Source of the DNA: Mizuhopecten yessoensis
Taxonomy: Eukaryota
Reading direction: 5' to 3'
Assembly: GCF_002113885.1 (NCBI RefSeq)
Contig: NW_018408922.1
Location: 1-64,000 of the forward strand
DNA: 64,000 nucleotides
Shown: piece by piece, positions 1,624 through 59,900 of the stretch
Position numbering within the stretch: the first letter of the stretch is position 1
How the letters are laid out: each line of letters starts with the position of its first letter
Position numbers and translations under genes: made by a program
The notes under the pieces: generated by a model
What the model saw: only the letters and a program-made list of their open reading frames with translations
Databases searched by the model: none
What the model was told of the DNA's origin: nothing

Positions 1624-4600
1624 CTGTAAAAGAATAAAATCAGATATATAGATACCTAGCTTTCCGATTAATGTACGGAAGCTAAAAGTGTAGCACTCAA
1701 TCTTTAATTGGTACAAAGAGTTCAACTACTTTGTTTAAATTATGTAGAAGAGCGTCTTCCGGAAATAATGAGGTACATCGTTAATTTAGATAGCCATTAA
1801 AATGTTACTTTTCAAGCCATGAAATTAATAGACTGACGCAAATAAGAAACTAATGAATAGACGTTTAGTTGATAGATGATATATGTTAATAATAACGTCT
1901 ATAGAGAAATAGGTTTGTGTGTACTATCAAGAGAAATAAGTTTGTGTGTACATAAAGTACAATTGTACAGGTTTTCTTATTGTCGTATTGAATACGGTAA
2001 CATAAAGGTATTAAGGTTCATTTTATAAGAGCGGGGTAGTTCAAACGTTATAATAAACCAACTCATGCATTTCAATATCGCACGCGTTTCATTACCCTAA
2101 ATGAGTCGATTCCCAAACTTAAGAAGATGTATGTCTTTAAACTGATACTGTTTTGAATCCTAACACTCACCGACGTAGTTGATGTGGCCTTCGAGGTCCG
2201 CGTGGGAATATTGGATCATTTCGTCCGTCTCCTCGTCGGTCAGTTTCTCGCCCAGAGTGGTCATAATGTCCTTCAGTTCTATGGCCGTGATGTACCCCCT
2301 CGCGTTCGAATCAAACACCTTAAACGCATCTTTGATTTCCTGCTCTGTATCCGTGTCGTTCATTTTCTTCGACATCAACTGTAGAAACTCTGGGAACTCG
2401 ATTGAGCCACTCTCTGTTGAGTACGTAATTCATTTTGCGTTTTTAATCATATTTATTACGTATTTCATTTTATAAATAGTACATTAAATTAAATACATAT
2501 TTCAAGGATCCAAAACAAACATTGTTTCATGCTATATTCTATGTATATTAATTGTATTTTCTTTATGTAAACGTGTAATTGTAAATGTCAGGTTTAAAGA
2601 ATTGCGTGTGATCAAAATAAATGGGATTTTACGCTCTTGTTTAAATCTCAGAATTTAGAAAGCACTCGCATTAAAGAAAGTTACCATTTCAATTCCAGTT
2701 TGGATTATTTACAAAGATTCTGAACTGAGTAGCCACATGGTAGCTTTAATTGGGTTTCTTCATCAGCAGGTGCTATCTAACATTGTATTTCTAGTGAGAG
2801 CTTTATATATACGTCTATACTTATATATAACTCATACTCGGACCCATGTGCGGTATCGTTAAAGCCACTTATACCAGCTGGATAATTAATTGCACTAAAA
2901 GTCACAAAACTGTCGAATCTTCATCTTAACATTTAGTTTCAACACATGGTTGTTCTAACGCCAGAAGAAGTGCCTGTGAGTAAAATTGATTAAAATATTT
3001 AACGTTTTTGCGGCTGCAGGGGCGTCAATTATAAACAGAGGTGAGCCCAGTGCTTGCATCATTAGTTATATTCAAACATTGTCACGGCTTCCGCAGTTTG
3101 GTCAGTTTACTAGATTCTAAAACACAAATCTGTAGCTGTTCGACATGCATAACATTGGAAATTCTCCATTAAATTTTAAACAAAGCTTTTTATAAAGTCA
3201 TGGTTCAGTGATTAAGTGAGTAAATCTCGTTATTGACGATATATGCTAAAGACATTGTTGCTATTGGTTACCACATCCAATCTCGCAATCTGTCAATAAA
3301 GGAACTGAAACAATTCAAAGTTACCAACATCACATGGAATTTTTCCATGTAGAAATAACAAGGTTATTTACTGTTTAAACATTTTAAAAGTGATCGACAC
3401 TTATGATGAAATACAGAGATATGCGCAAGTTTGTTGATAATTTTAAGATTAGCGATTTGTATCACTTTGTAAATGCCAACAGACAAGAGTAATAACATTT
3501 AACGGTAAGTTATCCTGATTGACCGTAATACTATTTAGAAATGTAATAAATACTACACCATACGGTAATGCAATTCTTTGTTGCACACAGAACGAAACCG
3601 GGGAAAGATTTAGAAGCAAAGTATAATAATGTTGAAAAATGAGTTAGGTTTTTTTAAGAAATACAAACACATACGATCATTGTCGACTTCGTTGATCATG
3701 TCCCTGATTTCCTGTTCCGTCGGTTCCTGCCCCAGAGACTTCATCACCGTTCCAAGCTCCACTACATCCACCGTACCGTCTCCGTCACGGTCAAATATCT
3801 TAAACGCCTCCTTGAATTCTGTACAGAGAAACACAATCAGTAAGGACAAGCTAAGACTAGTCAAACTTCGTTTCCTTTACTTACATGTAACATGTATACC
3901 AAGTGTATAACTTATCCTATTTCTTGCAAAAAGTAGGGTTCCAATATTTTCAAACAATACCTTTAAAATCAAAATTCAAAATGCGTCATTTCTTTTAGAA
4001 TCTAGTATTGGAATAATTTCTTCAATTCACTATAATACATATACCATGTGTCAGCAAAAGCGACGATGTATTTTTTAGTAAGATCTAGTTTTGAACCATT
4101 GGGGTTATAGAGAACTGTATCAAATGAAATATATTAAGCAAACGATTTTGATGGTTTTATGTTTCTTTAAACCCTTACAGTTATACTGTAAAAGAGGAAA
4201 TGTTCACAGTGTGGAAATGCTTGCATTTTTGCGTTAAATATATAAGTGCGAAAATAAATGCACGCAAATGTTTATATTATACAGATTATAGATATAATAA
4301 ATGTTAAGATTTCGGACTAACTGTTAGAGCTACAACGCGAATATATCCATACGCAAATATTTACACTTTTACAGAATTATAAATTTGCCGGTAGTAGAAT
4401 TAATTACAGTTCCACTGTACATACATACATACCATAAAATCGGATTTAACTGAAGATCTGTATCTAATTGTATCAATTTCCATGAGATTAATTGATTCTC
4501 ATAAGATAATCCATTAATTACATTAAATCTTTAGATAAATATATTTGTGTGTACTATCCAGAGAAATATATTTGTGTGTACTATCCAGAGAAATAGGTTT

Positions 4601-7600
4601 GTGTGTACTATCTAGAGAAATAGGTTTGTGTGTACTATCAAGAGAAATAAGTTTGTGTGTACTATTCAGAGAAATAGGTTTGTGTGTAATATCAAGAGAA
4701 ATATGTTTGTGTCTACTATCCAGAGAAATAGGTTTGTGTGTATTACCCAGAGAAATATGTTTGTGTGTACTATCAAGAGAAATAGGTTTGTGTGTACTAT
4801 CAGAGAAATAGGTTTGTGTGTACTATCAGAGAAATAGGTTTGTGTGTACTATCAAGAGAAATAAGTTTGTGTGTACTATTCAGAGAAATAGGTTTGTGTG
4901 TACTATCAGAGAAATAGGTTTGTGTGTACTATCAGAGAAATAGGTTTGTGTGTACTATCCAGAGAAATAGGGTTGTGTGTTTTATCCAGAGAAATATGTT
5001 TGTGTGTACTATCTAAAGCCGATCAGAATACCGCTTAATCCGGTCACAATCCGGTGAACGAGGAGAGAAAACCAGTCACATTTAAAAGTCTCCACCACAG
5101 TGTACTGTACAATCTTGGGTAAAGATTTAATATCTATATCAGGACTTAAGACTGGTGCCATTCATGCATGTTGTGTTCAATTTTAATTATTTTGAAAGTT
5201 GCACCGATACAAATTTTACTTTTATGGTGATCCCTTTCCCCCTACACGACATACACTAGAAGTTTTAGATATATACAGTAACATCCAAATCATAATATTC
5301 CGGATGGTATGGGTTCCTTTTCAGAAATGATTTATCAGAGTTATAATCATGCCAGAAAGGAAATAGTCATTGCATTACAGTTCTGGCAGTGGTATAGGAA
5401 AACTTTAACATAATTTAGTTTAATTTAACTGTGTTCGGATAACAGAGGTTTCCGTATTACTAAGGTTCCGGTTTACATAAATGCATCAAATGGATGGTAA
5501 CGAGTTTCTGATTGTTTCATGAATAATTTTTAATTCAAATTCAAACTTTAAAAACAAATACTAGGGACATCTTGTGTCTTAAAGAAACATGCGATATACA
5601 TTTTTAAATAGGAATTCAAGAACTTCCTGTGTGGCTAAGGTAATAGTTTTCCAGATGTATATGACAGTGACACCATTAGTTCTGGTTATTTCTTTTCATG
5701 TCTGTAAGCAATGAAGACTACTGTAGTACGATTCCAAAGTCCTCCCGTGACTGAAGGCCTATCAATCGATCGGGAGTCTTACAATCTTAATTTCAAATGA
5801 CATTAATAAAGAAAAAAACGCATCCTATTCCTACACTCAACTGAGCAGTTTATACAACATCTGTGATAAATATAGATTTGGGTGTGAAGCTGGCCTGCAA
5901 TGCGGGACCGCTACTGTGACTAATTGACGCCAGTTTGACGTGTAAATTCACTAAAAGAAACTTACAAATTAAACCAGAATCCACACATGATTTGAATCTA
6001 ACAACTACATTTCACTATAGAATTATCCGTTTGTTTCGATCATACATTCATACAAGATATAACCGATGGGACAAAAAGATGTTCATGTAATTTCATTAAG
6101 CAAATATAATTTGAAAACCTTGGAAATATTCATCAGTTCAGCACGTAAAATGAAACAAACAAAACGCCATCTACAATCACTAGAAATAAGAAAGCTACTA
6201 TCAAAACTAAACATTTAGAATGACTGAATGTTAACATACAAAGCAAAATAGAGTAAATATTTACTGTACCATATTTAACTCTATTGTCAGTTTAGGACGC
6301 ATCAGTAATAAAAAGGAATCCATGTCTGAACATAGATAGATCTACAGCTAAACGGGAAGGTGTGTAAACATCTTTTTATCATTACTAATTTACAACTGTT
6401 GGTTATAACTATTAATTTTTTAAAGATGTAATTCATGAAAACCTTCCAGACTAAATACACAAGGACACGATTGGAATTACCGAAGGAACCACAAAATCTT
6501 ATTTTATTCTGAAATGATGTCTGGTAAGAATAGGTGACCTAACTCAATGTATTGACCCAGTCTATACAAAGGACGATATATGTACAGGTACAATGACGAC
6601 AGTTTAGTCCACTAAGTATTGTAGTTTGATCCCAGTGATCACTGATTCGAATAGTTCACATGGGTCCCTGACGAGCTATCGATATTAACATAGCTATATA
6701 ATGTATAACTACACAAGCTCTGTACACTATATATATAGATACCATCTTGATACATACTTTTGACGACAATAAGGTCCGAAGATGCATTTAGATAACTAAG
6801 TTAAGATATAGAACGACCTTCACAATGATACCTAACGTCTAGAAGTGATCCGAAGGAGATATTTTTGTTGATTACATTATGTGTCCAATAAAAATCTATT
6901 ATTGCTCGTTCATAAGAGAACCGTCTTTCGCATAAAAAATACGACCAGCAGTCTGCGGGCTATACGTATTTACTTTGAATGCATAGCATCGGTTTGATGA
7001 ACTAAGTGTAGAAAACGTTATAGCTGACCTACATTATGCACACCCTTTCAGCATATCGCCTGTGTATTAACAAAATACGACTAAAAACACCACAGTTACA
7101 TCAACGTTAATAAGTACAAAAATAAATATGATAAATCTGCCATGTAAAAATAAAGCGCACGAGTTCAAATTAGATAATTTCTATATTGTTTCTACACATA
7201 AAAACTAACTGTTATCTGGTCCAATTATCATGCTAAGTTAACATGATTACTTTATAAATAGGTAGAGTTTCTGTATGTTCCAGTCCAGGGATGAAAGCAT
7301 AGTCAGCATTAGTTCAGAGAAAAACAAGGGAAGGATTCTTATCCTAATTACACAGAGGTGGATTTTTCTTAATACAAATAAATGCATACTAATCGTTTGA
7401 TTTCAGCGGAGAACTCAAAGTAGAGACTGCATTCTATACTGGCAAGGAGAAAAAAAAATGAAAACACCGTAATTGATAACCAATATAAATCGTTATTGAA
7501 AGCCTCATAAAATCATACAATATTGACCATTAATTAGCTAGTTATCAAGCTTTTCATGACGTAGTGTATCACAACCGAAACCAAAGCATACATCCAAAGT

Positions 7601-8266
7601 ATGTACCGAAGATTATATGAGTGGCAAAAAGTTAAAAAAAAAAACCTACACGCGTTCGTAATATGAGGATGTGAAATTCTCATTCGGTACAGTGAAAACC
7701 TACAATGTCGGCTTTCAGTGACTGTCGAAAACCGTGACGTAACTTGATGGAAGATTAGGATAATGACCTGTGTAGATCTATATTTATATTTATACACATG
7801 GAAATGGTAGTACACTCTGCAGTAAGGCAAAAGGGAGCGAAACGGGAGTGGTTGTAAGTGATAGAGTAATAAGGGTCATAAGTTATGATCATTTACTTAT
7901 GCTGTTGTTCTAACCTGAATGAAGTGACCTGACCAAGACTTGTCTCGTCTCCTCTACCGGAAAACAGTCAACTCGTACCATCCTTCATAGTACCTATCGG
8001 CCTCCTCTTCTCTACTTCACTTTATAAGTGGAGGGATTTATCTGTACTTTACGCTATCATAGACATAGTCGAGAAGCTCTATTAAAACGTAGTGTTTTGG
8101 AGCTGCAAGCTGCAGCACCATAATAGCTAATGAACTGCATAGAGAACTATGGCGTCTGACTAGATTACGTCACATACAGGAGTGTGCGTTCTGCGAGATG
8201 ATTTTAGGGTGTATTTCACCACGACGTAAACTTACCATCTATTTGTTCCTGTGAGAGATGTTCCAT
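1595..8266 (-). CDS. Calmodulin-like protein A (148 aa), join(8266-8236,3818-3675,2413-2171,1623-1595)
   Basis: Four coding exons (31+144+243+29 nt), all GT-AG with phase-1 introns. Protein: [148 protein letters not shown], colinear with calmodulin. Confidence 0.92.
1902..1951. repeat. Two-copy patch of the 27-bp minisatellite
   Basis: tagagaaataggtttgtgtgtactatcaagagaaataagtttgtgtgtac; same unit as 4535-5014. Confidence 0.85.
2171..2413 (-). CDS. CaML-A 243-nt exon (EF2 end, EF3, EF4)
   Basis: caacag|AG AGT GGC ... AAC TAC GTC G|gtgagt; overlaps ORF 2160..2378. Confidence 0.95.
3675..3818 (-). CDS. CaML-A 144-nt exon (EF1, EF2 start)
   Basis: ctctgtacag|AA TTC AAG GAG ... GAC AAT GAT C|gtatgt; overlaps ORF 3610..3864. 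Confidence 0.95.
4186..4374. mobile_element. Degenerate MITE-like element with CTGTAAAAG...CTTTTACAG termini
   Basis: Short terminal inverted repeats with internal GCGAA/CGCAAA motifs; a similar element lies at 32469-32676. Confidence 0.5.
4535..5014. repeat. 27-bp minisatellite (about 17 copies)
   Basis: Unit agagaaataggtttgtgtgtactatcc/a; the source of the spurious LCVLSREIG ORFs. Confidence 0.95.
8236..8266 (-). CDS. CaML-A first coding exon ([10 protein letters not shown])
   Basis: attttgcag|ATG GAA CAT CTC TCA CAG GAA CAA ATA GAT G|gtaagt; 31 nt, homologous to calmodulin ADQLTEEQIA. Confidence 0.88.
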
Positions 8267-9255
8267 CTGCAAAATAATCAATCGAGAGATATCAACTTAG
8301 ACATCATGTACACCGTCTCAATCTTCATATACGTCACACTAACTTTGAAGTAAATCAAGTAAGTTTTATTATACTTTTCAGATGCTTGATATACAAACAG
8401 GCATAGTTTTTGCCCCTGAGGGAATTCAAAACAGTGATGTGCGTATAAGTGAAACGCATGCATCTTTTTTTTTAATATTATTTCACATAAAATGTATTTT
8501 TACAGTTATATATATCATATTTAAATTGAGTAATAAATATGTGTGTAATATATCCAAACACAACATATTAGCGTACCAACTAAACGATTTTTTTTCTGTA
8601 TAAAGGATAAAGTCTAATCTTATAGTTACGAGAGGGATATGAGAACCAAATACAATAAAATACAGTACATACATCACAGATATCATAGGTAAGCATGCAC
8701 AAATAAATTCTTATACATTGTTTCGTTCTCAAACTATATCTTACGGAACCTAATTACTTGAAAAGATGCCAATTCTTCAATTTCCATTCAGAACAATTAG
8801 CTGTATGTTTCTTTACCTATGTCGATGACTACTCCATTGCCTGCGCCTCACCGAGTACAAAACGAAGGTGTTGTAGTTCAAAGGTCAATGTTTATAAGTT
8901 ATAATCCAATTAAGTGAATCCAGAAAGTGATTTGTTATACAACAATTCTCCATGAACACACAAATAAAGCATACGAAAGTGGATAAGGTGATTTCAGTAA
9001 ATATAAGTTCTGTGAAAAGTTTAAAAGTCTGCTTTCATCTTAAACAATAAAATGAGCCCAGCACGTACGGGTTCGAAGTGTGTGATGGTTACAGCTATTA
9101 GTTTTATTTGCTTAACATATGACCGACAGCTGTTCACCTGTAGTGTAGTCAGGTGCTCCAAAACATCAGGCAGGCCTGCTATTATCATTAACACACATTT
9201 ATATCAGTGAAGAGTAGTTTGTTTTTTATCTGATAGTAAAGTAAAAAAAACTCAC

Positions 9256-9357
9256 CGTGAGCTAGGGCGATTCTGACATTACAGTTGTCCCTCCGTCTTA
9301 CTTGGTCACAGTGTAATTATTCTGGTAATTTGGGTTTGGCAGGAGCAGTCTTAAATA
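9256..9357 (-). promoter_or_regulatory. Probable CaML-A promoter and non-coding first exon
   Basis: TATTTAA at 9357-9351 (minus), then an approximately 70-nt leader ending in the strong donor ACG|gtgagt at 9256/9255. The TSS is inferred. Confidence 0.55.
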
Positions 9358-11998
9358 CGTTATATCAGAATATCAAATCTTTTTGGCCCATTTACAAAAT
9401 ATAGTCCTTTTCTCGAAAGGTCAGAGTCTTCTTAGTGTATTGCAGTTTAGTCGATAATTGAACACTGCGCTGTGATCTGGAACCGATCTGCCTTAATTAA
9501 CTATTCAGAACCAGCGCGGACAGCCCCGTATGAAGAACAATCACAGCCGTTAAATTGGTTATCAATATCTATAGCCTGTTTGTGCTTTGTAAAATCCTGT
9601 TTGATATACAGTTAACAAATCATACCTCTAAGACGCATTGAGGAAATGTTATGTTCACCGCCCTAAAACCACAAACCAACACATGTAGTGTTCTGTTTAC
9701 AAAAATAGATGGCGGTGTCTTACTGAAGCTGGGAGAGGGAATCAGTTGATATCAATGCAAGGCTCTTTATCTGTAGATTTAAGCGTCTTCTTGGTTATGG
9801 CTGTTGTGGTGGGGAACACTTGTAAGAGTCGGGCAACCAATCTTGTTGAAGCTATCAGCACAAGTATTACACGACATGCATTCTGTAGTGTAAGCTCCAC
9901 AATCTCAGATTAATCAGTACACTCGCTTGATTTGGAAGATGTTGTTTCAAAATAAACCGACAACAGACCATCCTCTATAAATGTTAACCCCAGCATCTTC
10001 CTTCACAGATTCCACTCCTTCGTTTTAGTTTAGAACTAAATGTATATGAAATAACATGCACGAGTAACTATTACACACCATCTTTACTCAGATATACTGA
10101 TTCTCTGCCATTCGGTAACTAACTGAACATAGTAATACTGCTGCATATTAATAATAAGAAACGTTTCCCCTGAGAGCCCTTAATTGTTCCAGACTCTTTC
10201 GCTTCTGACTATCAGATATGCAATCGCTGCTCCGGAATCCTATCATAGTATCGAGGCCAATGTTTTGTGTAAACATTTTGTTTTTACTTTAACCATCCGG
10301 GTAGAGATATGTTTTCGATAAAGAATAAAGATAACCAAGTTGAAACGTGCTTTATCTTATTTTGAGAAAAGAAATTAAATAAGGAAAGGCACGGATCACT
10401 GGTTCATAGGAAAACAGAAAGTATTCTGGAATAAATACTAGAACAAATTACTATTTTATGTTATTAAAAATACAAACAAAAACAATGAAACTAAAACGGT
10501 TTCTAATGCATATAATATGTGAAACATAATCGTTATTTGATCCGAACGTATTGTTTTCGAATTTATTTGAATATTTTATTTGGTTTATATCCACTGCATT
10601 TATCTATATTTATGCTATCAATTCAATAGCCTGGGGAAATCTCTTCATCTATACACATACGGTTATACCCCAATGCCTGTAGAAGTACTCTGTGGGTTTA
10701 TATGTTACAGCTACATTTAAGTGAACCCTTCATAGCACCACTTTACCGTTAAGACATATTTCCTGGTCTGCGTTTCTCCACATGCATGTATCTTTTCTAT
10801 AAATTTAAAAATACCAAAACCATCTGATTTATTAATTTGGCATACTGTCGTTATATTGGACAACTCAGAAGCCATGTGCTTTGCATTATCTAGGTCAATC
10901 GTCACTAACAGTGCAAAGTCAGGGCGATAACTAGTCTCACAAATGTGTGGTACAATATAACAACACATGCAACCGGTTTAAAGCAGTCAACTATTACTTT
11001 CATGCAAACTAATGCAGCAAAGTTTCAATATTTTTACCTACATGTTTCACATTTTTAGTAAATTTATCTACTTCCATGATTTAATGTTCGTTATAATGAC
11101 ATCAAATTAACATATTTTTTATAACCTTAAATTTATCGTTATCACAATTATGACAGTTCACTAGTAAATATTAAGGTTAATGATGCCGTGAAATGGAGGC
11201 CATCCCATTTCTCTATAGTGTTATAGTGATATTATGTATTTATATTATTTATATAAGATGACACATATTTCCCTTAATGCTTAATAGTTTTGTCAAAGGT
11301 CAGCGATTTGTGATACTGACTCCACGTTACTGTTTTTATAAACAGTTCGTCTCGGTCACTATCGCTTTCTCAGGTTCATATAACCATATGTTTAGCTCGA
11401 CAAAAGTCCATCATCAATAAATATGTCTACGGCATCACAATAGCTTCTTTATGACTTAATAAATGATTGTGCAGTTTTAGTTTGACATCCAAGGAACTTT
11501 TGCACTTCATGGTAAACTTCCAAAAAGGTGAAAGGCTAACAGCATTGCCAATGTTCCTTATAAATTTCCATAAATCTAATACAATACACAACAATGTATT
11601 TAAGGACGAAAAGGTAAGTCATATCTAAATTACAGTATTATATAATCAAACAATGTAAAAATAAGTGTTTTTTTATATTATATTGTTAAAATGCGTCATA
11701 TCCCACTTCAGGTGTGCACCCATATCATCATCATTAATTGATTGTTTTGAAATTTGCTTGATGTCGTTGCAGACTTTGGCACCAGAATCGCTACCAGTTA
11801 CCTTTTGAGTGACGTGCACCAAACCCGTGTCTGTCCGTTTGAAACGTATCTGAGGACATTACAATAGCCGAAGTATTAGATTACGGGTGACTGGAAACGA
11901 GACACGTTCATATAAAGAATTAGTCACAACTGTACAGGATAATTAAATACAATGAGCTACCAACATAAAACAATTCACATATTGCTTATACCCTGGCT

Positions 11999-12005
11999 TA
12001 TAAAA
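11999..12005 (+). promoter_or_regulatory. Candidate TATA box of CaML-B
   Basis: TATAAAA about 160 nt upstream of the ATG exon. Confidence 0.45.
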
Positions 12006-12159
12006 CCATCAAACCATGCATAAAAATCGATTCGTTCAGATATCAAAACAACCACAGTTTAGTACTAAACGGACACATTGAAGATTCCAACAGCTCATGA
12101 CTACCCGTATTATACGACTAATAGGCCCTATGTAGGCGAAAACAGGGATTTCCTTAAAA

Positions 12160-12162
12160 ATG
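12160..12162 (+). CDS. CaML-B ATG-only start exon
   Basis: aaaaATG|gtaagt, the classic calmodulin intron immediately after the start codon. Confidence 0.8.
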
Positions 12163-15100
12163 GTAAGTATCATATTGCAAACAATAGATACATGTTTTTT
12201 GGCGACTAATTCTGTTGAAGGTGGTGGTAGTAACCGTGTGATTAAATAGAAATAGAGGCATCATGCTAGGGTTATTCTAAAGGATAATTGATTGGGTTTA
12301 TATGACATGCCTAACCCGAATCACAGTCTATTGTTTTAAAATAGATTTTTCGTTTGTCTATCTCTGTGCTCATACAAACATTGAATGACTAACATGTTAA
12401 CAATGTTTCTATGCTAAATGGTAATTAAGGTTAGTTTGTTTTTATCGTTTTATGAATATGGACCACTTGCAGAAATCATTGTTATCATTGGTTTTTAAAT
12501 CATCTTAGTCTTTTATTCGATGCAGTTGCCGGACATAGCTTAAAGCTGCACTTGCCCTTATTTTACAAAGAACAAACATTTTCGTGATTTGCTTTACCAA
12601 ACAATTTGTACTGTACAGTTATTTATTTCCTCGTCCTAGTCCTACGTGTATTCGAGTACTTATGAAACAGGTGAGAGTTTATTGACAGCTTATCGCATTA
12701 TGCGTACCCCTATCCATATTAATACGGATGGCTTCTCATATTTTGGATGAGTTAATAGCCTGCTGCATCCCACATTGGATGTTATAAATGTTCCCTGCAG
12801 ATGATAGGGGTTTATTCTGTAGCTTGTGATTGGAATTTGAAATTTAACATTGATACACTGCATACATATCCAATATCATATTCTAATGGGTAACCCTGAC
12901 CAACTGATATTTTTAATCATTTTTTATTATTCAAGTCTACGACGTCAGAACAAGCTGAAGATGAAATAGACCTCTCACCAGATCAGATAGCTGGTGAGTG
13001 AGGCATTCATACTGCATTTCAGTACATAGATACATATCAATAAATGATTGAGAGATCCCATGTAGAATATATAAAGGACGGAGCGGTTGTAAAGGATATC
13101 TACGTGTATACTTGATGTTTGTTTCGAAGAAGTATTTTATTCATGATCAAGGGTTGTAGGCATTGATTTTTTTTTCTTTTTGAGTGAAGAGAACTTCATC
13201 TCTTGGGACTAAGATAATGGAAATAGAACAATTAAGTTTTGAATGAATACTTCATGAATAAATAAACATGGAAAAGCGTGTCAAAAAATGAATGCAGCTT
13301 CTGATTTTCCAAATTATGCATTTTCCAACAAAAGGGAGACAGTTAAATGACAAAATGTTGACAGATAGTTTGAAACATCAGTAATCACAGTGTCATTCCG
13401 TTTGAACATCACTGCATGGAAACAGTGATAACAAATCAAAACCATATAATTTTCCAGCTAAATTTAAGCTTTAAGGGTTCTGGAATTACCCTACTCAAGG
13501 ACACATCAACATTCCGACGTTTGATGGATTTGAATCTAAGACCTTGTACACTTCTAAACGTGCTACACGTCTCACGTGTCAGGCTTTTTTTTTAATCAGT
13601 ATTTTTTTTTTTTCTTTGGCAGTAGCTCATAATGATTTTTATCTCTCCAATAGAATTCCAGGAGGCATTTAGCCTTTTTGATAAAGATGGTGATGGTACA
13701 GTGTCGGCAAAGGAACTTGGAACGGTCATGAAGGCTCTGGGACAGAACCCATCAGATGCCGAACTACAAGAGATGATAAAAGAAGTAGATACTGATGGTA
13801 AGGTAAACGCATCAATAACAATAATGAACAATCGAATGTTTACAACAAGGCATGTTTTGTAATTGTTGTTAAAGATTATGTTTATTGTTTTATATAAAGT
13901 GTTACGAACTTTAAAAATCACAACTTATTTCTAATGTGCCATTTTTGATTCGGTGAACTCATTGATTAATATAATTGTTTGGGTCTATATTTGGTCCTCG
14001 CAGAGATTTTTTTCATATTTTCAACAACGTTGCCAGACTGGGACATTATTGAAAATGACGGTCCAAATTGGAGATCCTTGAAATACTCCTGGTCAGGACA
14101 ATTTTTTTTATACTTTCTCAAGAGCCTGAAAATCACTATTTTAATATAATGATCAATTTGTTTCCTTATATTGCTGCTGCTAATGTGTAGTTAATCATGT
14201 TGATATCAAATATGTACTTATTTGTTATAATTTTTGATGCCAGTACTGGGTTTTTTGTCAAAGCTTGAGTCCGAATTGAGCTTAACAGATTACTTGACAT
14301 AACTTCCCTTTCCTCATTCTATGCCTTAAAGTGTCAGTTCACCAAATGTTATTGCTTATAAATTACGTTTCAGAAATATTCTTTGTATGGAAAACATATT
14401 TTTAAAATCTGAAACCGGTGAAGTTTTTATTTTCAAAATAAGAACATATATAATATAACAAAATAATCAACTACCCCTTAACAGCATTAAAAGGAAGTTA
14501 TCAGCTTTGCATTTTAAAATAGTGATTTTACAGGCTTCATATTAAACTTTCTTTTCTGACCAGGAGTAGTTGAAGGAGCTCTCATGTGTCAATATAAGTC
14601 CTAAAGGGTCTGAGATCACTTTCAATACTGAAAGCAGTCTGGCTTATGTGTTTCGAAATATTTTTTTTTTTTTAAAGAAATCGTTGCGTGGGCCGACCAT
14701 ATAGGATTTATAGCATTGGTTTGGAGCCCACCTTTACAGCCACTCAAAGTTCTTCGTGTTTCTGTTACATCTGACAGTTTATGTGTTAACAAATACTGGA
14801 TTAATATAATACTGTCGGGATATTTTTGTGACGTAAACACTTTCATGATATTATAATTGGTACTATTTAATATCAAAATGTTCTAAGGAGCTTCATTCTT
14901 CTTCTTCTTATTTGTATTACAGGCAACGGTACGATCGAGTTCGATGAGTTTTTACAGATGATGGTAAAGAAAATGAAGGATTCTGACAGTGAACAGGAGA
15001 TAAAAGAGGCGTTCCGAGTGTTCGATAAGGATGGCAATGGTTACATAAGCGGAGAGGAGCTCCGCATCGTTATGGCTTGTCTGGGAGAAAAGTTATCTGA

Positions 15101-15478
15101 CGAAGAGGTAGAGGAGATGATTAGCGAGGCAGATCTTGACGGGGATGGTCTAATTAACTACGATGGTAAGGAATAAATATAACTTTTTAAGGAACTTTAT
15201 TCAACTTCTTTCGCCATGCATTTTTTAATTACATAATGCATTTACGTTTGTGTATGTGTTTCTAAAATCTCTGTGGTCTTTTTTGGAGACTTTTGTGTAA
15301 ATCTAGTTTATTTCTGGCTCACGTTTCAGTTATTTAATTAATATGATCACATGCCTACCTAACTTTTGAAACAAAATGTTTAAGTGTATTGTCTATTGAC
15401 TTAAAAACATCACTGTTGCAACCTAATGATGCACATTTTGTAACTGCAGAATTTCTGGCGATGATGTCGAAGAGTTGA
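12160..15478 (+). CDS. Calmodulin-like protein B (158 aa), join(12160-12162,12936-12993,13654-13797,14923-15165,15450-15478)
   Basis: [158 protein letters not shown]. Four canonical EF loops; about 70% identical to calmodulin by manual count against the remembered sequence. Confidence 0.93.
12936..12993 (+). CDS. CaML-B exon 2 ([19 protein letters not shown])
   Basis: tttttattattcaag|TCT ACG ... CAG ATA GCT G|gtgagt; 58 nt, phase 0 to phase 1. Confidence 0.85.
13654..13797 (+). CDS. CaML-B 144-nt exon
   Basis: ctccaatag|AA TTC CAG ... ACT GAT G|gtaagg. Confidence 0.95.
14923..15165 (+). CDS. CaML-B 243-nt exon
   Basis: tattacag|GC AAC GGT ... TAC GAT G|gtaagg. Confidence 0.95.
15450..15478 (+). 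CDS. CaML-B terminal exon (EFLAMMSKS*)
   Basis: taactgcag|AA TTT CTG GCG ATG ATG TCG AAG AGT TGA; 29 nt. Confidence 0.92.
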
Positions 15479-19473: not shown

Positions 19474-19511
19474 CTATCTCCAATCTTTCTTTGTTATCAT
19501 CATCACAAACT
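19474..19511 (-). CDS. CaML-C terminal exon ([12 protein letters not shown])
   Basis: cttttcgttccag|AG TTT GTG ATG ATG ATA ACA AAG AAA GAT TGG AGA TAG. Confidence 0.9.
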
Positions 19512-47287: not shown

Positions 47288-48208
47288 AGTCCAGTTTTCT
47301 CTTATACAGTCCTCTCTTCTGTCATACAGTCCTGTCCTCTCTCATACAGTCCTGTATTCTCTCATACAGTCCTGTCTTATCTCAAACAGTCCTGTCTTCT
47401 CTCATACAGTCCTGTCCTCACTCATACATTCTTGTCTTCTCTCATACAGTCCTGTCCTCACTCATACATTCTTGTCTTCTCTCATACAGTCCTGTCTTCT
47501 CTCATATAGTCCTGTCCTCTCCCATACAGTCCTGTTCTCTCTCATACAGTCCTGTCTTCTCTCATACAGTCATGTCCTCTCTCATACAGTCCTGTCCTCT
47601 CTCATACAGTCCTGTCTATTCTCTCATACAGTCCTGTCTTCTCTCATACAGTCCTGTCCTCTCTCATACAGTCCTGTCTTCTCTCTCATACAGTCCAGTC
47701 TTCTCTCATACAGTCATGTTCTCTCTCATACAGTCCTGTCTTCTCTCATACAGTCCAGTCCTTTCTCATACAGTCCAGTCCTTTCTCATACAGTCCTGTA
47801 CTCTCTCATACAGTCCTGTCTTCTCTCATACAGTCCTGTCTTCTCTCATAGAGTACTGTCTTCTTTCATACAGTCCTGTCCTCTCTCATACAGTCCTGTC
47901 TTCTCTCATACAGTCCTGTCTTCTCTCATATAGTCCTGTCCTCTCCCATACAGTCCTGTTCTCTCTCATACAGTCCTGTCTTCTCTCATACAGTCATGTC
48001 TTCTCTCATACAGTCCTGTCCTCACTCATACATTCTTGTCTTCTCTCATACAGTCCTGTCTTCTCTCATACAGTCCTGTCTTCTCTCTCATAGTACTGTC
48101 TTCTCTCATACAGTCCTGTCTTCTCTCATACAGTCCTGCTTTCTCTCATATAGTCCTGTTCTCTCCCATACAGTCCTGTTCTCTCTCATACAGTCTGTCT
48201 TCTCTCAT
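47288..48208. repeat. 20-bp minisatellite (about 45 copies)
   Basis: Unit cagtcctgtcttctctcata; the source of the 216-aa and 173-aa spurious ORFs. Confidence 0.97.
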
Positions 48209-48467: not shown

Positions 48468-48493
48468 TCAGTGGGACATCATTTGTACAAACT
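48468..48493 (-). CDS. CaML-E terminal exon (EFVQMMSH*)
   Basis: ctttttatatttttcag|AG TTT GTA CAA ATG ATG TCC CAC TGA. Confidence 0.9.
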
Positions 48494-51400
48494 CTGAAAA
48501 ATATAAAAAGAGCAACATGTTTTAAATGGCATATTTACATGCATATCGCGACCTGACTTAAGAGGACCTATTTTATGACATTTTTGTGTGTGTCGAGTAA
48601 AAAGTAAAACATTGATTTCGATGATAATCGTTTTGTGTAGTCAGTTGACTTCTTAATCGTATATACATTAAACCTTCACGTGAGACATTCTGGTCCTTGA
48701 ATTGTATCTAGAATGTAAAGCAGAATATACACAAAATAAACAACTACCTAAATACAAGAGAAAAACAATCATCAACATTAAATCAAACAAAATAATTCAA
48801 CATACTGAACCAGGGTGTAAATAATCATAAGCCAGTGTATACCACAGCGTCAACACACAAAATCTAAATTATCATGGTCTAAACACACGAGGACAAAATG
48901 TACCACAGCGTCAACAAACAAAATCTAAATTATCATGGTCTAAACACACCAGGACAAAATGTTCCACAGCGTCAACAAATAAAATCTAAATTATCATGGT
49001 CTAAACACACCAGGACAAAATGTACCACAGCGTCAAAACACAAAATCTAAATTATTATGGTCTAAACACACCAGGACAAAATGTACCACAGCATCAACAA
49101 ACAAAATCTAAATTATCATGGTCTAAACACACCAGGACAAAATGTACCACAGCTTCACCACACAAAATCAAAATAATCATGGTCTAAACACACCACGACT
49201 AAATGTACCACAGCGTCAGTACACAAGGGAAAAATGTACCACAGCGTCAACACACACAATCTAAATTATCATGGTCTAAACACACCAGGACAAAATGTAC
49301 CACAGCATCAGCACACAAGGACAAAATGTACCACAGCGTCAACACACAAAATCAAAATTATCATGGTCTAAACACACCAGGACAAAATGTAACACAGCGT
49401 CAGTACACAAGGAAAAAATGTACCACAGCGTCAACACACAAAATCAAAATGATAATAGTCTAAACACACCAGGACAAAATGTACTACAGCGTCAGTAATC
49501 AAGGACAAAAAATGTATCACACATCCAACATTTGAGGACAAAATATAATTCACCGTCTATACACAACGGAAAAACACATCACAAAGTCAACACCCAAGGA
49601 CAAAATTGATTAATAAAAGTCGACACCATAAAACAACTACAGAAGCTGAGTGAAGGGGTATCACGACAAAAGGAAAAACAGCATGGACCCACTAAAAGTT
49701 CCGAAAAAAATATCAGGATCTCTAGCAGATCGATAAGCGGTTTTGCACCAAATATGGCTGCTGTCATGATACTTCCTGTCAAATCCGGGATCGGTAGTCA
49801 GTCGATGACAACCAAACACACTGTGAGGTATCGTTAATCATGACCGACACTAATCCGTATTGTATTGAAGGTCAACAAAGCATGACATGACACTCCTTAC
49901 TTATTAAAGCCATAATTATATCTGTTGTGGAAGGGTACTGTGTTAATGCAGTCGTCAACTCTGCATCACGAAGGATTCTCTTTTACAACATTCTCACTGG
50001 GTCATGGTACGCCTCTGTTAAACTTTTCTTACGGAATATACATCATTGCGTCGGTCGTTTTAGCTGGTTTGGTGTCTGTCGTTAATTAAAAAAGTATAGT
50101 TTCAATTGCTGAGTGATGATATTACTAAGTTGTGTAATACGAGTTGTTCCAGTCCTAACAGGGGTTCCATTGACTTATTGATGGCATCCCCACGTGTCAT
50201 ATACATTGCTTTTGGTCGTTAAAGTTGTCGGGTGTCTGTTCAATATTAATTAGTGTACGTATTGCCTAGTCATGGCTCTCATATATGTAAGATATAAACA
50301 ATGCGCGTGCGTGCATTATGGTGGAGTACATGTATATAACGAGGGTACGTAGGTAATGCCTGAAGGTCGCTTGTGGTCTAAATTGATTGTTTTTCAAACA
50401 TTTTCAATTCAAAGAACCCCGAGTCATATTTTCCAACATATTATACAAACATATGTTTATTATATCTGTTCTACAAAGCAAAATATAACGTAAGTCTTTT
50501 TCGTGTTAACTTTGGTGCCCGTACGCCTACGATAAGCAAGGTAATCCTGATATCCTATAATTCAAATTAGGCTATTCTTTTGCGCACGATAACATTTGTC
50601 ACGTGGTGCTTATGTCTTCATTTCCAATAAGTTCGACTTTTTATCGTTTCTGACCTTGTGGACAGCTGTATCATTTTGTGTAATTAACCTACATTTGGGA
50701 ATGATTCATTAGTTTCAGTCGCAATTTGATCGACAGACGATATACCGAATGTTTATTTCATCAATCAATCAAAACCAACGATCTATCGACATCGCTCGTC
50801 AACGCAAGGATTCAGCAATTTTACAGATTTACAAACAGGATTTCAAGTCACCTTTGCGAAAAGTTCAGTCACGGACTGAAAGCGTATTTCGCGGTTCAGC
50901 AAACATTTATTACCGTAAGCTTGTCAGGTATAAAGCAGATTTAAAGTTTAAACAGAAACTTGTTTTCGTCCGTTAGGAAATCTTCAAAAACAACATCTAA
51001 CTGTGGCTCGGTTGTAATATTTTTGCGTGGAAGATTTTTGATAGTTTTTGGTCTGCTAGCGCTTGTCCTATTGTCCAATAATACATGGTCATAAATCAAT
51101 GGAAAGTGTCGTTGCATCGATTGCAAACCTGATGTCATATCCATAATGCCGATGATTCGTTTTACCTTTCAGGTTGTCTGTCGATAGTGAAAATTGTATC
51201 AATGTCGCATATTTTGTTTCAAGTCACAATCGTTTTCGTCATTTTTACAGATAAAGAAATCAATATTTATTCTGAACATCAAAAAAAATTTGAAGAGAAA
51301 TGGACCATATTCACGAGTAGAAGATATACAAAATATTTATCTAGAAGAAATCAGTATGGTTACGATTACATTCAGCTTAAACAAACGTACATACAATATA

Positions 51401-52122
51401 GCAATTAGCCATTTTGTTTCAAAATCTGGAAGTAAAATGAATTTCAGCCAATAGGACACATGTGTGTCACATACGATCTGTGGTAAACTATATACTTCCC
51501 AGTATTGTACGGGACATGGGTGCTACACGTATTACAGAAGACGTAATTGTACACAAATATCAATACACAGTGGAGAAACCCCCTCACTAAATTATGTATG
51601 ACCACGTAATGCATTGTAACAACAGCAAGTCATCCATTGAAGGGCGAGTGATTGACAGATTGTTATCAGGTAATTGACATTGTGTTCGGCATTCAACCGA
51701 CACGTTATGGTCTGGTTAACGAGATGGAGATATTTCAATTAGTGCAATGAGCCGCATCATCAGCCACGGGTCGTCTGCAGGGAGGAGAATGAAACTACAT
51801 GTACAGTTACAATGTGTTAGAGTTCCCTCCCCTTGGTTTTCAGCTTCAAAAAGATATGTGGCAGCAAAACAGAAATACAAATGACATTTCAGCATATTAC
51901 AACCGACATTTTAGTCTTCTGTTTGCCACCTTTGTTGCTATCTTAGTGGCAAATTAGATTGCGAAAATGTTATATATAACTATTAACACGTAAATAAACA
52001 GGTAAATAATTGTATGTATGATAGATGTATCTTGACCCTCTTTGGAACATAATTGTCCTTTTTCCCAAGGAAAATCAAGGCACTGTATCCGATAGATAAG
52101 GATGTGATGTTGTTAATGTACG

Positions 52123-52166
<44 letters not shown>

Positions 52167-55100
52167 TTTCTTCAGGAAAAAGACAAATTAAACACGTATA
52201 CAATGTATCACATTTTGCAGATTGGACATAAATATATTTTTATATATTATCACAGATATGAAATAATGGACGAAATATATAGTTATTTTTTGGTATAAGG
52301 ACACGTGATCATGAGGGATTTCACTCCTCGGATATCCCAAAGTTTGGCATTTGAAGATGTGCAAGTATATTTGTATATATTGAGCATGCGTGTTTTTGTG
52401 TAGTACATGTATCTTGGGATATCTGAGGAGTGATAGATTGGTTAATGCATTTAAGGAAATTGTGAGGTTTGTTTGTTAGGGTATAGTGTTAAGATGGCTA
52501 TTTTGGTTGAGGAACGAATAGATTGAGTCAAAGAAGATTGATTCTTTCATCATTTTAGCAAAATCTACCAGGGCAAAATATCCATAAAAAAATAAAACAC
52601 AAGCGTCAGATTGAAGAACACGTTCTCCGACCATCGTCTCCTGGTTCCCGTCACCAGTATCTCAGACGTCATCTGTATATCACTCCATACCGTATAGCTT
52701 ACACGTCATTGATTAAAATCAGAGACCGGAAAAAAAGCCAGGAATAATGAGGATTCCGATGTAATGATGACTCAGTGCATCTTACTTGTCTGGGGTATAA
52801 ATACAGGCTCATTATATGTCTGATGGGAATTACATGTGTAAGCACGCATCCCTTACCTCAATTAAATGACGTCTAGAGTTACTTTAATAAATAACTATAC
52901 TTAATTTGAATTTTTTTTCTTCTTCATTTTTGTTTATATATTTGTTTGTTTTAGCTAACGAATGTAGATGACAAAACTTCAGCTAAATAATGTAAGTTCT
53001 TTGTTTTGGTAAGTTAATGTGATCAATTATCATCGCGCACGTGCTGCCCCGAGGGAGATTGCGCGAAAACTGGACATTGTCTTTTTTGTCAGTATTGAGG
53101 AGCCACGCTGAACCCAGAGGGAATTCGTGAGTTTAAACCGTCGGCAACGAAGAATAAAACAGACTTCCGTATGGAAAATATAATGCTCATAACGACTATC
53201 TTATGGCTGTTGCAGCGCTATTGCCGAGCCCTAGTGGTTTACTGATGATTCTATGAATATTGATGAAGTAATATCAAAATAAACAGGCTTACTAGCCGTT
53301 AGTCTCATTAGCGAGATCAAATAGTTCACGGTGAAGCATACAGATTATTTTTGGAGGAAATAAAGATAAGAACAATGCCGATATATATTATTATGATTTT
53401 TTAAAACTTGCATATCGAAAAGTCAATGAAGATAATATTGTTTTATATATATCTTTCTACATAGTTTTAGGGTTCATGGTATTCTTCCGCGGAAATCTTC
53501 TGTTTGTTTACGTTCGTCACAGACCGAGGGTCTCGATGATCATTGAGCCTAGAAGTCATCTAAAATATATGATATTTAGTTGACTTTTTTATCGATGGAT
53601 GACTATCTCAGGTAGAAATATATGTATATATATTCATGTAGATAATAAACAGTTTATCGCATAAGTCATCAAGAGCACGTGGATAATTTCAAGTCCACCT
53701 TCGGTAGCCACTCGAAGGATACGCGTGCTCTCGATGAGAAACACAGTGTGATAATCTATAAATCCAATATAGCATAGGATCCTCAACCGAAGACAATATT
53801 AGATTTAGGACATCACATAACTTATATATATCTGAAACATCAAAAGATATATATATATACAAAGGAAGAAAAAACAGGTAAAATATAATGCTTTTTATGA
53901 GGCAAACATAATTATTTTCTCCATTCATTAATAAGCAATTAATGCGTGCCAATTCAGTGGGAATTCTATCCTTTTGTCGTACATAATAATGACTATTTTC
54001 TGTCGAGTACTTTTACCTTCATAATCGATCTCGCCATCCCCATTCCTATCAGCCTCCGCGAGCATATCCTTGACCTCGTCGTCTGTAAGCTTCTCACCGA
54101 TACAGGTCAACGCCACTCGGAGCTCCTCGAAATTTATTTTGCCGCTATTGTCTCTATCAAACATTTTAAACGCATGGCTTAGTTCCGCTTCTACCTCCGT
54201 TGTTGCCATCTTTACTCTCATCATTTTTGTAAAGTCGTCAAAGTTGATCATTCCGTCTCCTAGCAACAAATTAGTAAACAAATTAAAACGGAGCTTTTTA
54301 AGCTTTAGTATGAATGTTTCGAATTGTAATATTAAGAAAAAATATTGTTCAATTTTTATTACGTCTAATAATGATTTAGTGAATTGATTGCGTCAAAAAC
54401 CACAATGCTTCTCACAAATCCTGAATGTGTAATATTTGAAATATGCTTCGGTTTGAGATATGAAACATTATACATTGTAAAACACAGTGATATGGTTGTT
54501 ATCAGATGCTTCCAATGAACAATAAAAAGCAAACAACAAAATATTCTTACAAGAACATTTGAAATGTAGATACCCGATAACATATGTTATATCTAACATG
54601 CTTCTATATTAAAAAATTATATTCCGTCCAATAAATAAAATTAAAAACATATAAAGTTGATTGAAGCGGCAATAAAACTGATATTTGCCGTTATTTTAAT
54701 GGGCCTTTTGAGTGTACGGGATCTGTATGGAGCGTCGCTGTCTATTGTGTTGCGGGACATGCCAGTAAAGCGATGGTATTTCGGCACGATACTCTGGCAT
54801 TCTAAGGGGTCGTAGTAGGGTCGGTGATTTACGTAAACATGTAACAGAAAGACGCAATCTAAACGCTGAAGTCAGCACAATTGAACATTAAAAATGTTTC
54901 ACATGGTCAGAAGATATGGCCAGAATTTAGTAGAGTTACCTTATATAAACACCTACATATGTATAAACTAAGGTACGCTGAATAAAGTACCGACTAATAA
55001 TCACGGTCATTTTGTGGTGATCAATTGTGCGTTCATGTCTTTTATGACTTAAGACCAAAGCTATGTTGATAACGCCTAATCTGAATAAAAGGAAGAAATT

Positions 55101-56889: not shown

Positions 56890-56920
<31 letters not shown>

Positions 56921-59900
56921 AGTTTCAACTTACAAAAGTTGTAGAAACAATGAAGTTTTAAAGTCTTACGGGCGCGAGAAAGAATAAACCAGTTGTATTC
57001 CATGGTATGACCGTATGGTGCGATTATTTTTGAAGCTGCTTTCAGAAATGAAATTGCAAGCTATATGTACAGTGTAGTTTGATGGTAAATACGAACGTCA
57101 GTGCCTACGAACGGAACACTGTATCCCTCCGCGATGTTGTCTCCGTGGGATTCAACTATTCCAAATGAACAAGTTGTCAAATAAGAAAAGATGACACTCC
57201 GGAACGATGGATCCGGACGTTCCATAAGTTCATCAGGCCAGTACTGTACTTATTATCACAGGCATAGACGTATATAATATAGGGTATGGATCAGAAATAG
57301 TAACCGCGCTTGTATTTACACTTACACAGCTTAGAAATATAATGTACAAACCAGATGAATATATATATATATATCACAAACAACGTATGAGTAGACTAGC
57401 GCTTCAAAAACGTTACTCAATTACCACCTTGTTACAACAGCATTGCCTGTTACAATATTGTACCTGAGATCCCAAGGGGCCCAATTTCTGTTCGACTGCG
57501 CAACCAATTAGGGTTCCAATTTTCTATAGGGAATTTGCATATGTGTTATGTACACCAAGATACCCCCGTGAAGTCAATTATACAGCCCCAAATGATGAAT
57601 AGGTTATTTACACCGACGAGTATTAGTGTGAAAGGTCAAAGGTCGCAATCAACAGTTTGAAGATAACTCGATCCGTTACAATCCTCCATACCGCACTACT
57701 AATATCACTTGATATTCTCTCTAGGTGTTAAACAGTTTTCATTAAGTCCAGAAACGTGTCACTTTTATTCAATCTAAACATGTATATAAACATTCTAATT
57801 GTTTTCAATTATTTGGCATACAGAGAATTATATACACACTTTCCACAACCTGATATGGTACTATAAGCCCGATGGCTGGCAAGGTCGAGTATTGGTATAC
57901 GTCTCGAATGTTGATGCCCACTAAAGATCGATATTGACCAAATTGTATTCTTACCAAATTAAAAAACAACAACCTTATATTGTGTATTATTAAAATGTAG
58001 TAAAAGGGGAAAAAAATCAATAGGTCAAACTTTGTAGAATAACAAGAGACTGTACGACGTCCCCTTAAGGGCATTCTATGGAATGATTATCTTTGATTCA
58101 ATGTGTAGTAAAACGCGTTATACTGCCATTATTTACGAAAACAAGTTTTGACTTTATAACGGGGTTTGACGAAATATCGAGAGGTTCGAGTAAAGCAGTT
58201 GATAAAAAAGTAAAAAGATGTAAACAAAATTAAATATTGAAGTACAATGGTGCATGGCTACCCAGGTGGCAAATTGAAAATAGAAACTTTGGACTACAGC
58301 GAGGTTTTACGCTAAGTTGACTTGCCAAACGATACGGAACGTGAACGTAGACATATGTCAGTCTTATCTATATGTATTTACAATAGATATATATATATGT
58401 ACACTCTGCCAAGTTTTGCGGTCTGTGATTAAATTAAATTGGTCAACTCGGCACCGACGTTGTCCTAGTATCGATATTACGATCTAACACTGAGTACAGC
58501 TACACCATGGGGAAAAAGCCAGACTTCACTTAAATTGGTTTGTTAGGTAAACTTTTTTCACTTTCTTTATCATAAATGTGGTTGTTTTCTGTATCCGTGC
58601 GTGCGTCTGCTAAACAACAGATACGAGTGAGACTTATAATTCTATCAATATAGGAAAGATAAATTCAGTTCCTTCATTGTACTTTCGAATGTTTCTGTAG
58701 ATCCCATAAATATTGTAGATAGCTGTACAATGTTTGGTACAGTTATACAATGTAAGTGGTAAACACGAGCCCCACTCGTGCAACACACTTGACTGTGAAG
58801 AAATGATCTAGTCACGAACCATTCGTCCGTTTGTAAAACGAAGCAAGATGCTTAATCAGGATTACGAGTTAGTTAAAGTAACAGAATTGATACTTCCAGA
58901 AGAAAACTTTGTTTTTTTTTCTTTTATTTTTAAATCATATTCTAAAAGAACTGTTGGTCGTATTAATAATGTTCCTTTATCACACTCTGTCTCGTTAGTG
59001 GCAGTTTCGACATTGTTCATTCTTTAAGGATCCCTGTACCACTGTCAGAAACTGTAACTGAGCATTGGAAACTGTCTGTCCCGGCATGACTACAGCTTTG
59101 GTAAATTAATGCTGAAAAGAAAGCCATATCTTGCGGGTCTTTCATGAAAAAAATATAAAGACGAAATAGACAACAAATAATCAGCAAATATGTGTAAAAA
59201 TTCAGTGGGACCTTTCTAACCGACTAAGCTATCTTATCAACGAACGTGCCCTGACCCAACTGTAATACAGTTATACATTTATCAAAAAAAAAAAAAAAAA
59301 AAATATGGACAGGTTACTGTACATACGAAATACCACGGTGTCATGGGACAGAGATCCTTAATATCTAGTCTTTCATTACCGGAAGGCAAACGGGGGAGTT
59401 AAGTTTAAAAAGACGTTACTTCCGGTCGAAAACTTACCGTCTATGTCTTTGTCTTTTAACAGATCCTCCACTTCCACCTTTGTGGGATTCTGTCCTAAGG
59501 CCCGCATTACCAGGGTGAGGTTCTCCGCTGTAACCTTGCCGCTGTTATCAAGGTCAAACATCTTAAATGTCTCGCGTAAACCTGTAAACAAATAAAATAT
59601 TTAAATCACTTGTAATTTGCACGAATTTGAATGAAGCAAAATATAGCCATATTAACTGATATTTTATAACTTGAAGCAAGTTGTTCAAATTAATAATAAT
59701 ACTATGATATCCATCTTTATATTCAATGACATAATTAGTAAATAGGTTTTGAAAATACCATGTTTTGATTTGTGCGATTTGATACTGTGAAATTAACAGC
59801 GAACGTACCTTGCATCTCTTGAATAAGAAAATATGACACTAAGCCTAAACTTATACTTACGCGCAAGTTCCGTTTCCGACAGTTCCGGAAGAGTCTATAA

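Follow-up and report, generated by a model that had tools for sequence, protein, structure and literature searches.

Five intact calmodulin-like genes with differing EF-hand loop patterns at the start of a Mizuhopecten yessoensis scaffold

The window analyzed here, i.e., the whole 64-kb stretch of DNA, is the start of scaffold C5595 (2,296,768 bp) of the scallop Mizuhopecten yessoensis, whose assembly comprises 988 Mb in 82,659 pieces. A scan of all six frames and tblastn searches with exons taken from the window itself revealed exactly five calmodulin-like genes, named A to E, all of them intact and spliced. These are likely to be functional genes from the distal end of an old tandem array, with fixed and selected patterns of calcium-binding loops and with independent specialization. 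The array would have arisen from calmodulin through repeated duplication, with the calmodulin intron positions being kept, and each paralogue would be a separately specialized sensor or adaptor rather than part of a coordinated five-gene device. The window has a G+C content of 34% and two runs of N (23010-23140 and 42163-42313).

Gene B is encoded on the plus strand, and A, C, D and E on the minus strand. The five genes share one exon plan. A tiny first exon, or an ATG within the N-terminal exon, is followed by the exon for the N-terminal helix, by an exon encoding EF1 and residues 1-3 of EF2, by an exon encoding the remainder of EF2, EF3 and EF4 up to residue 11, and by a short last exon that finishes codon 12 of EF4. 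In all five genes, the three internal introns are in phase 1 and lie before the EF(K)EAF motif, at codon 4 of the EF2 loop and at codon 12 of the EF4 loop, and all junctions are GT-AG. We take these sites to be those of the animal and vertebrate CALM genes. Every exon was identified as an EF-hand in Pfam (EF-hand_7 or EF-hand_1) with E-values of 1e-7 to 1e-21, which excludes chance. The full products of 148-171 amino acids have four EF-hands in two lobes, as is typical for calmodulin and calmodulin-like proteins (CMLs). The spliced readings matched annotated or transcript-derived proteins, namely P0015 for E, P0022 for D, and P0001 and P0002 for orthologues of A. The EF2-EF4 exon was a 100% match to P0015, annotated as 'neo-calmodulin-like isoform X1 [Mizuhopecten yessoensis]', in the case of E and to P0022, annotated as 'Calmodulin [Mizuhopecten yessoensis]', in the case of D. 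No reading frame crosses an assembly gap, since both gaps are intronic. The extent of 2171-59581 given for the genes in an earlier, sequence-only reading of this DNA was too short, as the last exon of A is located at 1595-1623 and the first two exons of E reach to about 62659. The exons and gaps are as follows:

8236-8266, minus strand: gene A, start-codon exon (ATG, donor G/GTAAGT) with 10 residues and the first base of Glu
3675-3818, minus strand: gene A, canonical EF1 and EF2 positions 1-3
2171-2413, minus strand: gene A, EF2 remainder, EF3 (Arg5) and EF4 (His1)
1595-1623, minus strand: gene A, last exon, finishing EF4 Glu12 and ending in EFVRLMTAP and stop, C-terminus identical in Pecten P0001
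12936-12993, plus strand: gene B, N-terminal exon, 19 residues, with a transcript orthologue in contig L054
13654-13797, plus strand: gene B, EF1 and start of EF2, both canonical
14923-15165, plus strand: gene B, EF2 remainder, EF3 and EF4, all canonical
15450-15478, plus strand: gene B, last exon, ending in EFLAMMSKS and stop, identical in the L054 transcript
24648-24714, minus strand: gene C, N-terminal exon, 5' limit uncertain (acceptor 24693 or ATG 24714)
23010-23140, no strand: assembly gap in a gene C intron (24648 to 21133), nearest coding exons 1.5 kb and 1.9 kb away
20990-21133, minus strand: gene C, EF1 and start of EF2
20445-20690, minus strand: gene C, EF2 remainder, EF3 (Gln5, His9) and EF4, with a one-residue insertion between EF3 and EF4
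19474-19511, minus strand: gene C, last exon, 12 residues
43930-43935, minus strand: gene D, candidate exon 1 (ATGGCG/gtaagt, i.e., Met-Ala), fitting the P0022 start MA-LIDETF
42163-42313, no strand: assembly gap in gene D intron 1 (43935 to 41463)
41418-41463, minus strand: gene D, exon 2, 15 residues
38226-38369, minus strand: gene D, EF1 and start of EF2, canonical
36004-36246, minus strand: gene D, EF2 remainder, EF3 (Glu3, Arg5) and EF4, the exon matching P0022
35228-35304, minus strand: gene D, last exon, 25 residues including a 16-residue hydrophilic C-terminal tail
62657-62659, minus strand: gene E, candidate exon 1 (ATG/gt), P0015 starting with M-TLPELSETELA
59861-59894, minus strand: gene E, exon 2, TLPELSETELA
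59438-59581, minus strand: gene E, EF1 DLDNSGKVTAEN (Asn12) and start of EF2
54017-54259, minus strand: gene E, EF2 remainder (DIDGDGMINFDD, Asp12) and canonical EF3 and EF4, the exon matching P0015
48468-48493, minus strand: gene E, last exon, ending in EFVQMMSH and stop, 5.5 kb downstream of the EF3/EF4 exon

The large exon of gene A (2171-2413) is colinear with calmodulin residues 62-139 (E-value 2e-35), and the transcript orthologue of A, P0002, begins with MDQLSQEQIDEFKEAF. Exon 1 of gene B was not located in the window.

After splicing, all 20 EF-hand loops read as in the earlier reading, with three of the eight loops quoted there (A EF2, A EF4 and E EF2) being readable only once the exons were joined. 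It is known that EF-hand positions 1, 3, 5 and 12 provide the side-chain ligands, that Asp at position 12 (Asp12) moves selectivity toward Mg2+, and that basic residues at ligand positions disturb binding (PMC5983762). A loop was scored as canonical if it matched PROSITE PS00018, D-x-[DNS]-{ILVFYW}-[DENSTG]-[DNQGHRK]-{GP}-[LIVMC]-[DENQSTAGC]-x(2)-[DE], and carried Glu12, which was the case for 14 of the 20 loops. A EF3, A EF4, C EF3, D EF3 and E EF1 did not conform, and E EF2 matches PS00018 only by virtue of Asp12. The four loops of gene E, from EF1 to EF4, are DLDNSGKVTAEN, DIDGDGMINFDD, DRDNSGKINFEE and DRNGDGEIDYEE. Written from EF1 to EF4 with 1 for a canonical loop, the patterns are 1100 for A, 0011 for E and 1101 for both C and D. 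The claim that each paralogue keeps a different set does not hold, since C and D retain the same set (EF1, EF2 and EF4).

As predictions from sequence, two Ca2+ sites in A, four in B, three each in C and D, and two to three in E are reasonable. Gene A would bind Ca2+ via its N-terminal lobe (N-lobe) only, with Arg at the +Z ligand of EF3 and His at +X of EF4. Gene B would have all four sites and be under calmodulin-like constraint, and in C and D EF3 would be missing or weakened as a Ca2+ site. In gene E, EF1 would be dead, with Asn in place of the bidentate Glu12, EF2 would be altered by Asp12, and the C-terminal lobe (C-lobe) would be normal. The previous assignment of A as N-lobe only, of E as impaired in the N-lobe, of C and D as three-site and of B as four-site is reasonable at this predictive level.

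For conservation analysis, orthologues were searched exon by exon using the open frame around each exon, with the length filter set so that full-length proteins qualified; spliced models were joined only for alignments and trees and never used as search queries. The odd residues of A, D and E were found to be conserved among Pecten maximus, Ylistrum balloti, Argopecten irradians and a third pectinid transcriptome, and are thus not scattered at random among orthologues. First, Arg5 of EF3 and His1 of EF4 in gene A were kept in three species, i.e., Mizuhopecten, Pecten maximus (P0001) and the species of a Logan transcript (P0002), with EF3 reading D-x-[NSH]-A-R-G and EF4 reading H-x-D-x-[ED]-G-H. 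The EF3 loop of P0002 is DEHARGYITVDE, and the EF4 loops are HADMDGHINYVE in P0001 and HVDEEGHINYVE in P0002. In the A orthologues, the ligand positions of both N-lobe loops show no change. Second, EF3 of gene D reads DRE[ND]RG in two scallops, with Glu3 and Arg5 kept in Argopecten irradians P0024 (loop DREDRGYITVDE). In addition, P0043 from the heterodont Dreissena polymorpha groups with gene D (support 99/95) and has a non-canonical EF3 with Lys5 and Asp12 (DPTNKGYILATD). Thus, the D-type lineage, including the defect in its EF3, may be older than the split of pteriomorph and heterodont bivalves. Third, Asn12 in EF1 and Asp12 in EF2 of gene E are present in three genera (Mizuhopecten, Pecten and Ylistrum). 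The EF1 loops are DRDNSGRITAEN in Ylistrum balloti P0016 and DLHDNGKVTVEN in Pecten P0017; EF2 is DVDGDGMINFED in P0016 and is the same in P0017 as in Mizuhopecten (DIDGDGMINFDD). Both C-lobe loops are canonical in the E orthologues.

The distribution of changes within the lobes was informative as well. Of the five differences between Mizuhopecten and Pecten in the C-lobe of A, the two spoiled loops account for four, and the helices show none. In E, EF1 drifts at its ligand positions (Asp3 to His and Ser5 to Asn), with EF2 and EF4 both invariant. Such a distribution agrees with ion-free loops within lobes that are still constrained, with E EF2 perhaps still a metal site. Being invariant and accepted by PS00018, E EF2 is probably an altered site rather than a dead one, and it probably has a lower affinity or leans toward Mg2+. 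As described in the earlier reading, A and E are mirror images in their patterns, 1100 and 0011, both of which are conserved.

It is possible, if somewhat unlikely, that at least one of the supposedly dead loops still binds Ca2+ or another metal, e.g., Mg2+ at Asp12 or Zn2+ at the His-rich EF4 of A, and that the real stoichiometries differ from those predicted. E EF2 is conserved in three genera like a working site, A EF4 retains Asp3, Glu/Asp5, Gly6 and Glu12 in addition to conserved His residues at positions 1 and 7, and Gln5 of C EF3 offers a carbonyl oxygen. However, Arg at +Z in EF3 of A and D provides no ligand and adds a positive charge. Moreover, position 3 drifts among orthologues between Asn, Ser and His in A EF3 and between Asp and His in E EF1, as is seen in disused sites.

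Gene order and orientation have been kept among the one-to-one orthologues on Pecten maximus LR736840.1, where E, D, 22 kb of unread sequence, B on the opposite strand and A follow each other. A further calmodulin-like gene is present beyond A in Pecten, at the place where the Mizuhopecten scaffold ends. Nonsynonymous divergence (dN; Nei-Gojobori) between Mizuhopecten and Pecten amounted to 0.003 for B, 0.035 for A, 0.037 for D (exon 3 only) and 0.14 for E, and synonymous divergence (dS) was about 1 or more, i.e., at or beyond saturation. The low dN at saturated dS indicates strongly purifying selection and thus selected, functional genes. Gene B (12936-15478) differed from Pecten (L051:3272-3937) by one amino acid in 130 residues, and the same single change was found in a third species (L054:1983-2459). 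Gene B is about 74% identical to calmodulin in the large exon and carries an acidic N-terminal extension. Judged by these comparisons, calmodulin-grade constraint is acting on a protein that is not calmodulin.

Transcripts were found for two of the genes in a relative. A Logan RNA-type contig (L054) contains the uninterrupted, correctly spliced coding sequences of the A and B orthologues head to head, and the B orthologue transcript was found again in a second run. Thus, both genes are transcribed in a related species, and the splice models are right. In the window, A and B are arranged head to head about 4.7 kb apart (8266-12936). In the related species, the spliced transcripts of both lie in one 3.6-kb contig with about 520 bp between the start codons, which suggests a bidirectional promoter or 5' ends that overlap.

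The notion that the divergent copies are decaying duplicates, i.e., pseudogenes or neutrally drifting genes with loop changes as random damage, is effectively refuted by these data. Tandem arrays do carry dead copies, in-frame stops occur in at least four family exons elsewhere, and an orphan calmodulin-type terminal exon is present in the last intron of E. Against decay, the exons are open and the splice sites correct in all five genes, dS is saturated and dN/dS lies far below 1, the orthologues are syntenic, those of A and B yield spliced transcripts, and NCBI models exist for D and E.

The five genes belong to a much larger family. A genome search with the large exon of B gave 126 matches. 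Those of the exon-4 type numbered 27 on C5595 (2-392 kb), 18 on C201 (633-998 kb) and 11 on C5594 (2.21-2.32 Mb), with about 80 in the genome in total and at least 27 on the scaffold of the window; these numbers are exon matches and not gene models. The arrays span C5595:64001-392352, C201:633000-998300 and C5594:2214000-2317000. A total of 38 family members were read, covering C5595:1-264000 completely and 24 short loci, with only 3.2-kb loci beyond 264 kb. Members that most resemble calmodulin are over-represented in this sample. All loops were canonical in 19 of the 29 genes with four readable loops. The remaining patterns were 1100 (A), 0011 (E), 1101 (C and D), 0111, 1011, 1000 and 0010, and another gene with a degenerate N-lobe was found at C5595:185799. 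A canonical calmodulin exon is located elsewhere, at about 635 kb on C201 (L002).

It is very unlikely that the five genes form a coordinated set that splits Ca2+ sensing by lobe, affinity and kinetics, as had been proposed. In support of such a set, the patterns of A (1100) and E (0011) are true mirror images and both conserved, and the head-to-head arrangement of A and B with orthologue transcripts in one contig suggests a shared bidirectional promoter region. However, the limits of the set are given arbitrarily by the window and the scaffold end: the five genes are a slice of at least 27 within 392 kb and of about 80 genome-wide, and Pecten has the further calmodulin-like gene beyond A. In addition, C and D are alike in pattern, the family contains many other patterns, and no clade joins A to E. 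As the five-gene set is cut out by the window edge, a joint division of calcium sensing is unsupported. The trees were largely star-like, with no clade uniting A to E alone. A and D appeared as sisters (81/83) only if the EF3 columns were kept; their removal left a weak group (85/75) of A, B, C, L027 and D. A common origin of the defective EF3 of A, C and D is not clearly supported by these trees.

Several further features of the family were observed. Near-identical calmodulin copies are present on C5595 (L004, L006, L007 and L009), L006 having Gly at position 5 of EF4. The in-frame stops were located in exon matches at C201:885547, C201:929336, C5595:340742 and C5595:151535. The small contigs C82321, C82261, C82242, C61684, C64031 and C80884 matched with statistics identical to those of loci on the big scaffolds, C82321 matching the EF1 exon of B from the window. 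They are probably uncollapsed haplotype copies, which would slightly inflate the family counts.

Three points weigh against functional genes with fixed, selected loop patterns as the explanation. First, E evolves about 4-fold faster than A and D and about 40-fold faster than B, so that constraint on E is weaker. Second, Gln5 in C and Asp12 in E may weaken binding without abolishing it, Asp12 being accepted by PS00018. Third, no orthologue of C was found in an exhaustive representative search with the C EF2-EF4 exon, in which the top matches were giant multi-EF-hand proteins and generic calmodulins of at most 45% identity. The corresponding Pecten locus was not reached, as L051 stops 2.7 kb past B, and the look-ups of Argopecten D and of the B orthologue protein were without genomic flank.

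Gene E has its last exon far downstream, as do its orthologues, at distances of 22.6 kb in Pecten and 8.2 kb in Ylistrum. Since P0015 and the orthologues from Pecten and Ylistrum all use the distal EF..MM exon, EF4 of gene E has Glu12. The alternative last exon at 52476-52564 (DFAKMM..., which would give EF4 an Asp12) was rejected as the main form. This orphan calmodulin-type terminal exon on the minus strand, inside the last intron of E, has the acceptor ...CCCTGGTAG and reads DFAKMMKES..., with 29 codons to the stop. P0015, the annotated protein, does not use it, and neither Pecten nor Ylistrum yielded a counterpart. The exon may be left over from a lost paralogue or may serve as an alternative 3' exon. 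Long minisatellites lie in introns and spacers of the cluster, at 1-490 (52-bp unit), 4533-5013 (27 bp), 38542-39702 (28 bp), 47288-48208 (20 bp), 48840-49606 (61/31 bp) and 61108-62257 (55/47 bp). The only two open reading frames of more than 150 amino acids in the window are both spurious and made by the 20-bp array at 47288-48208.

In the likely mechanism, a degenerate lobe would keep its helices and hydrophobic target-binding residues. By analogy with IQ-bound apo-calmodulin and light chains, and with Arabidopsis CML13 and CML14 (PMC11272076), this lobe would hold on to a partner independently of Ca2+, and the intact lobe would serve as the Ca2+ switch. Fixed subsets of working EF-hands are textbook knowledge for plant CMLs and also occur in troponin C, light chains and centrins. 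Variable EF-hand occupancy is thus already known for expanded calmodulin-like families, and no new kind of system is described here. A search of the accessible literature yielded no paper on this scallop array. What is added is a clean animal case of syntenic, conserved paralogues in which the spoiled loops drift at former ligand positions and the helices are fixed. The genes provide natural test proteins for lobe-specific Ca2+ signaling in a bivalve, and the very large tandem calmodulin-like expansion documented for a scallop may bear on calcium handling.

Like the canonical calmodulin (L002), the window genes encode proteins of about 149 residues with four EF-hands in two lobes and have the same intron phases. 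However, they lack the near-identity and, except for B, the four canonical loops of a bona fide calmodulin, being 49-74% identical in the EF2-EF4 exon. A, C, D and E are only 49-59% identical to B in this exon, and B itself shares 74% identity with the canonical exon. Moreover, one or two canonical loops are missing from each of A, C, D and E, and B and D have N- or C-terminal extensions.

Gene D has a tail like that of CaLP of Pinctada fucata, a bivalve calmodulin-like protein with an extra hydrophilic C-terminal tail (PMC5040781). That D is the counterpart of Pinctada-type CaLP is unlikely. D and its Argopecten orthologue share an extra tail of 16 acidic or hydrophilic residues past the calmodulin end, such a tail defines CaLP (PMC5040781), and the mantle of the Yesso scallop is rich in calmodulin-related transcripts (PMC4391921). 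However, the mantle study (PMC4391921) does not identify the loci of the window. Nor is a signal peptide evident in P0022.

Troponin C, the essential light chains of myosin and yeast Cmd1 have the calmodulin fold with certain EF-hands naturally inactive; one lobe is a structural anchor and the other the regulatory switch. For scallops, site IV in the troponin C of the Akazara scallop is a point of reference (PMC6414500). The window genes differ from these proteins in being much closer in sequence to calmodulin itself. Among engineered lobe-dead calmodulins, the N-lobe sites are impaired in CaM12 and the C-lobe sites are dead in CaM34. Gene E resembles CaM12, and gene A resembles CaM34. In contrast to the engineered proteins, the window genes are natural and conserved and show about 40-50% overall divergence from calmodulin instead of just point mutations, and EF2 of E is probably altered. 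One could speculate, although we regard this as distinctly unlikely, that A and E are ancient, selected natural counterparts of CaM34 and CaM12 that compete with or complement calmodulin on shared targets, and that the about 80 genes form a combinatorial library of EF-hand occupancy. If true, channels or IQ proteins would be such shared targets, and cells would decode Ca2+ in a lobe-specific manner.

The plant CMLs, 50 of which are present in Arabidopsis, are similar to the family described here. Both represent a large lineage-specific expansion from calmodulin in which the members differ in how many EF-hands work and where these lie, Glu12 is often replaced by Asp, and basic residues occupy ligand positions (PMC5983762). 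Some plant CMLs retain a single working EF-hand and function on IQ motifs as myosin light chains that are largely insensitive to Ca2+ (PMC11272076). In contrast to the plant CMLs, the scallop expansion is independent and took place in an animal, a bivalve, and it has kept the ancestral introns of animal calmodulin and is organized in long tandem arrays.

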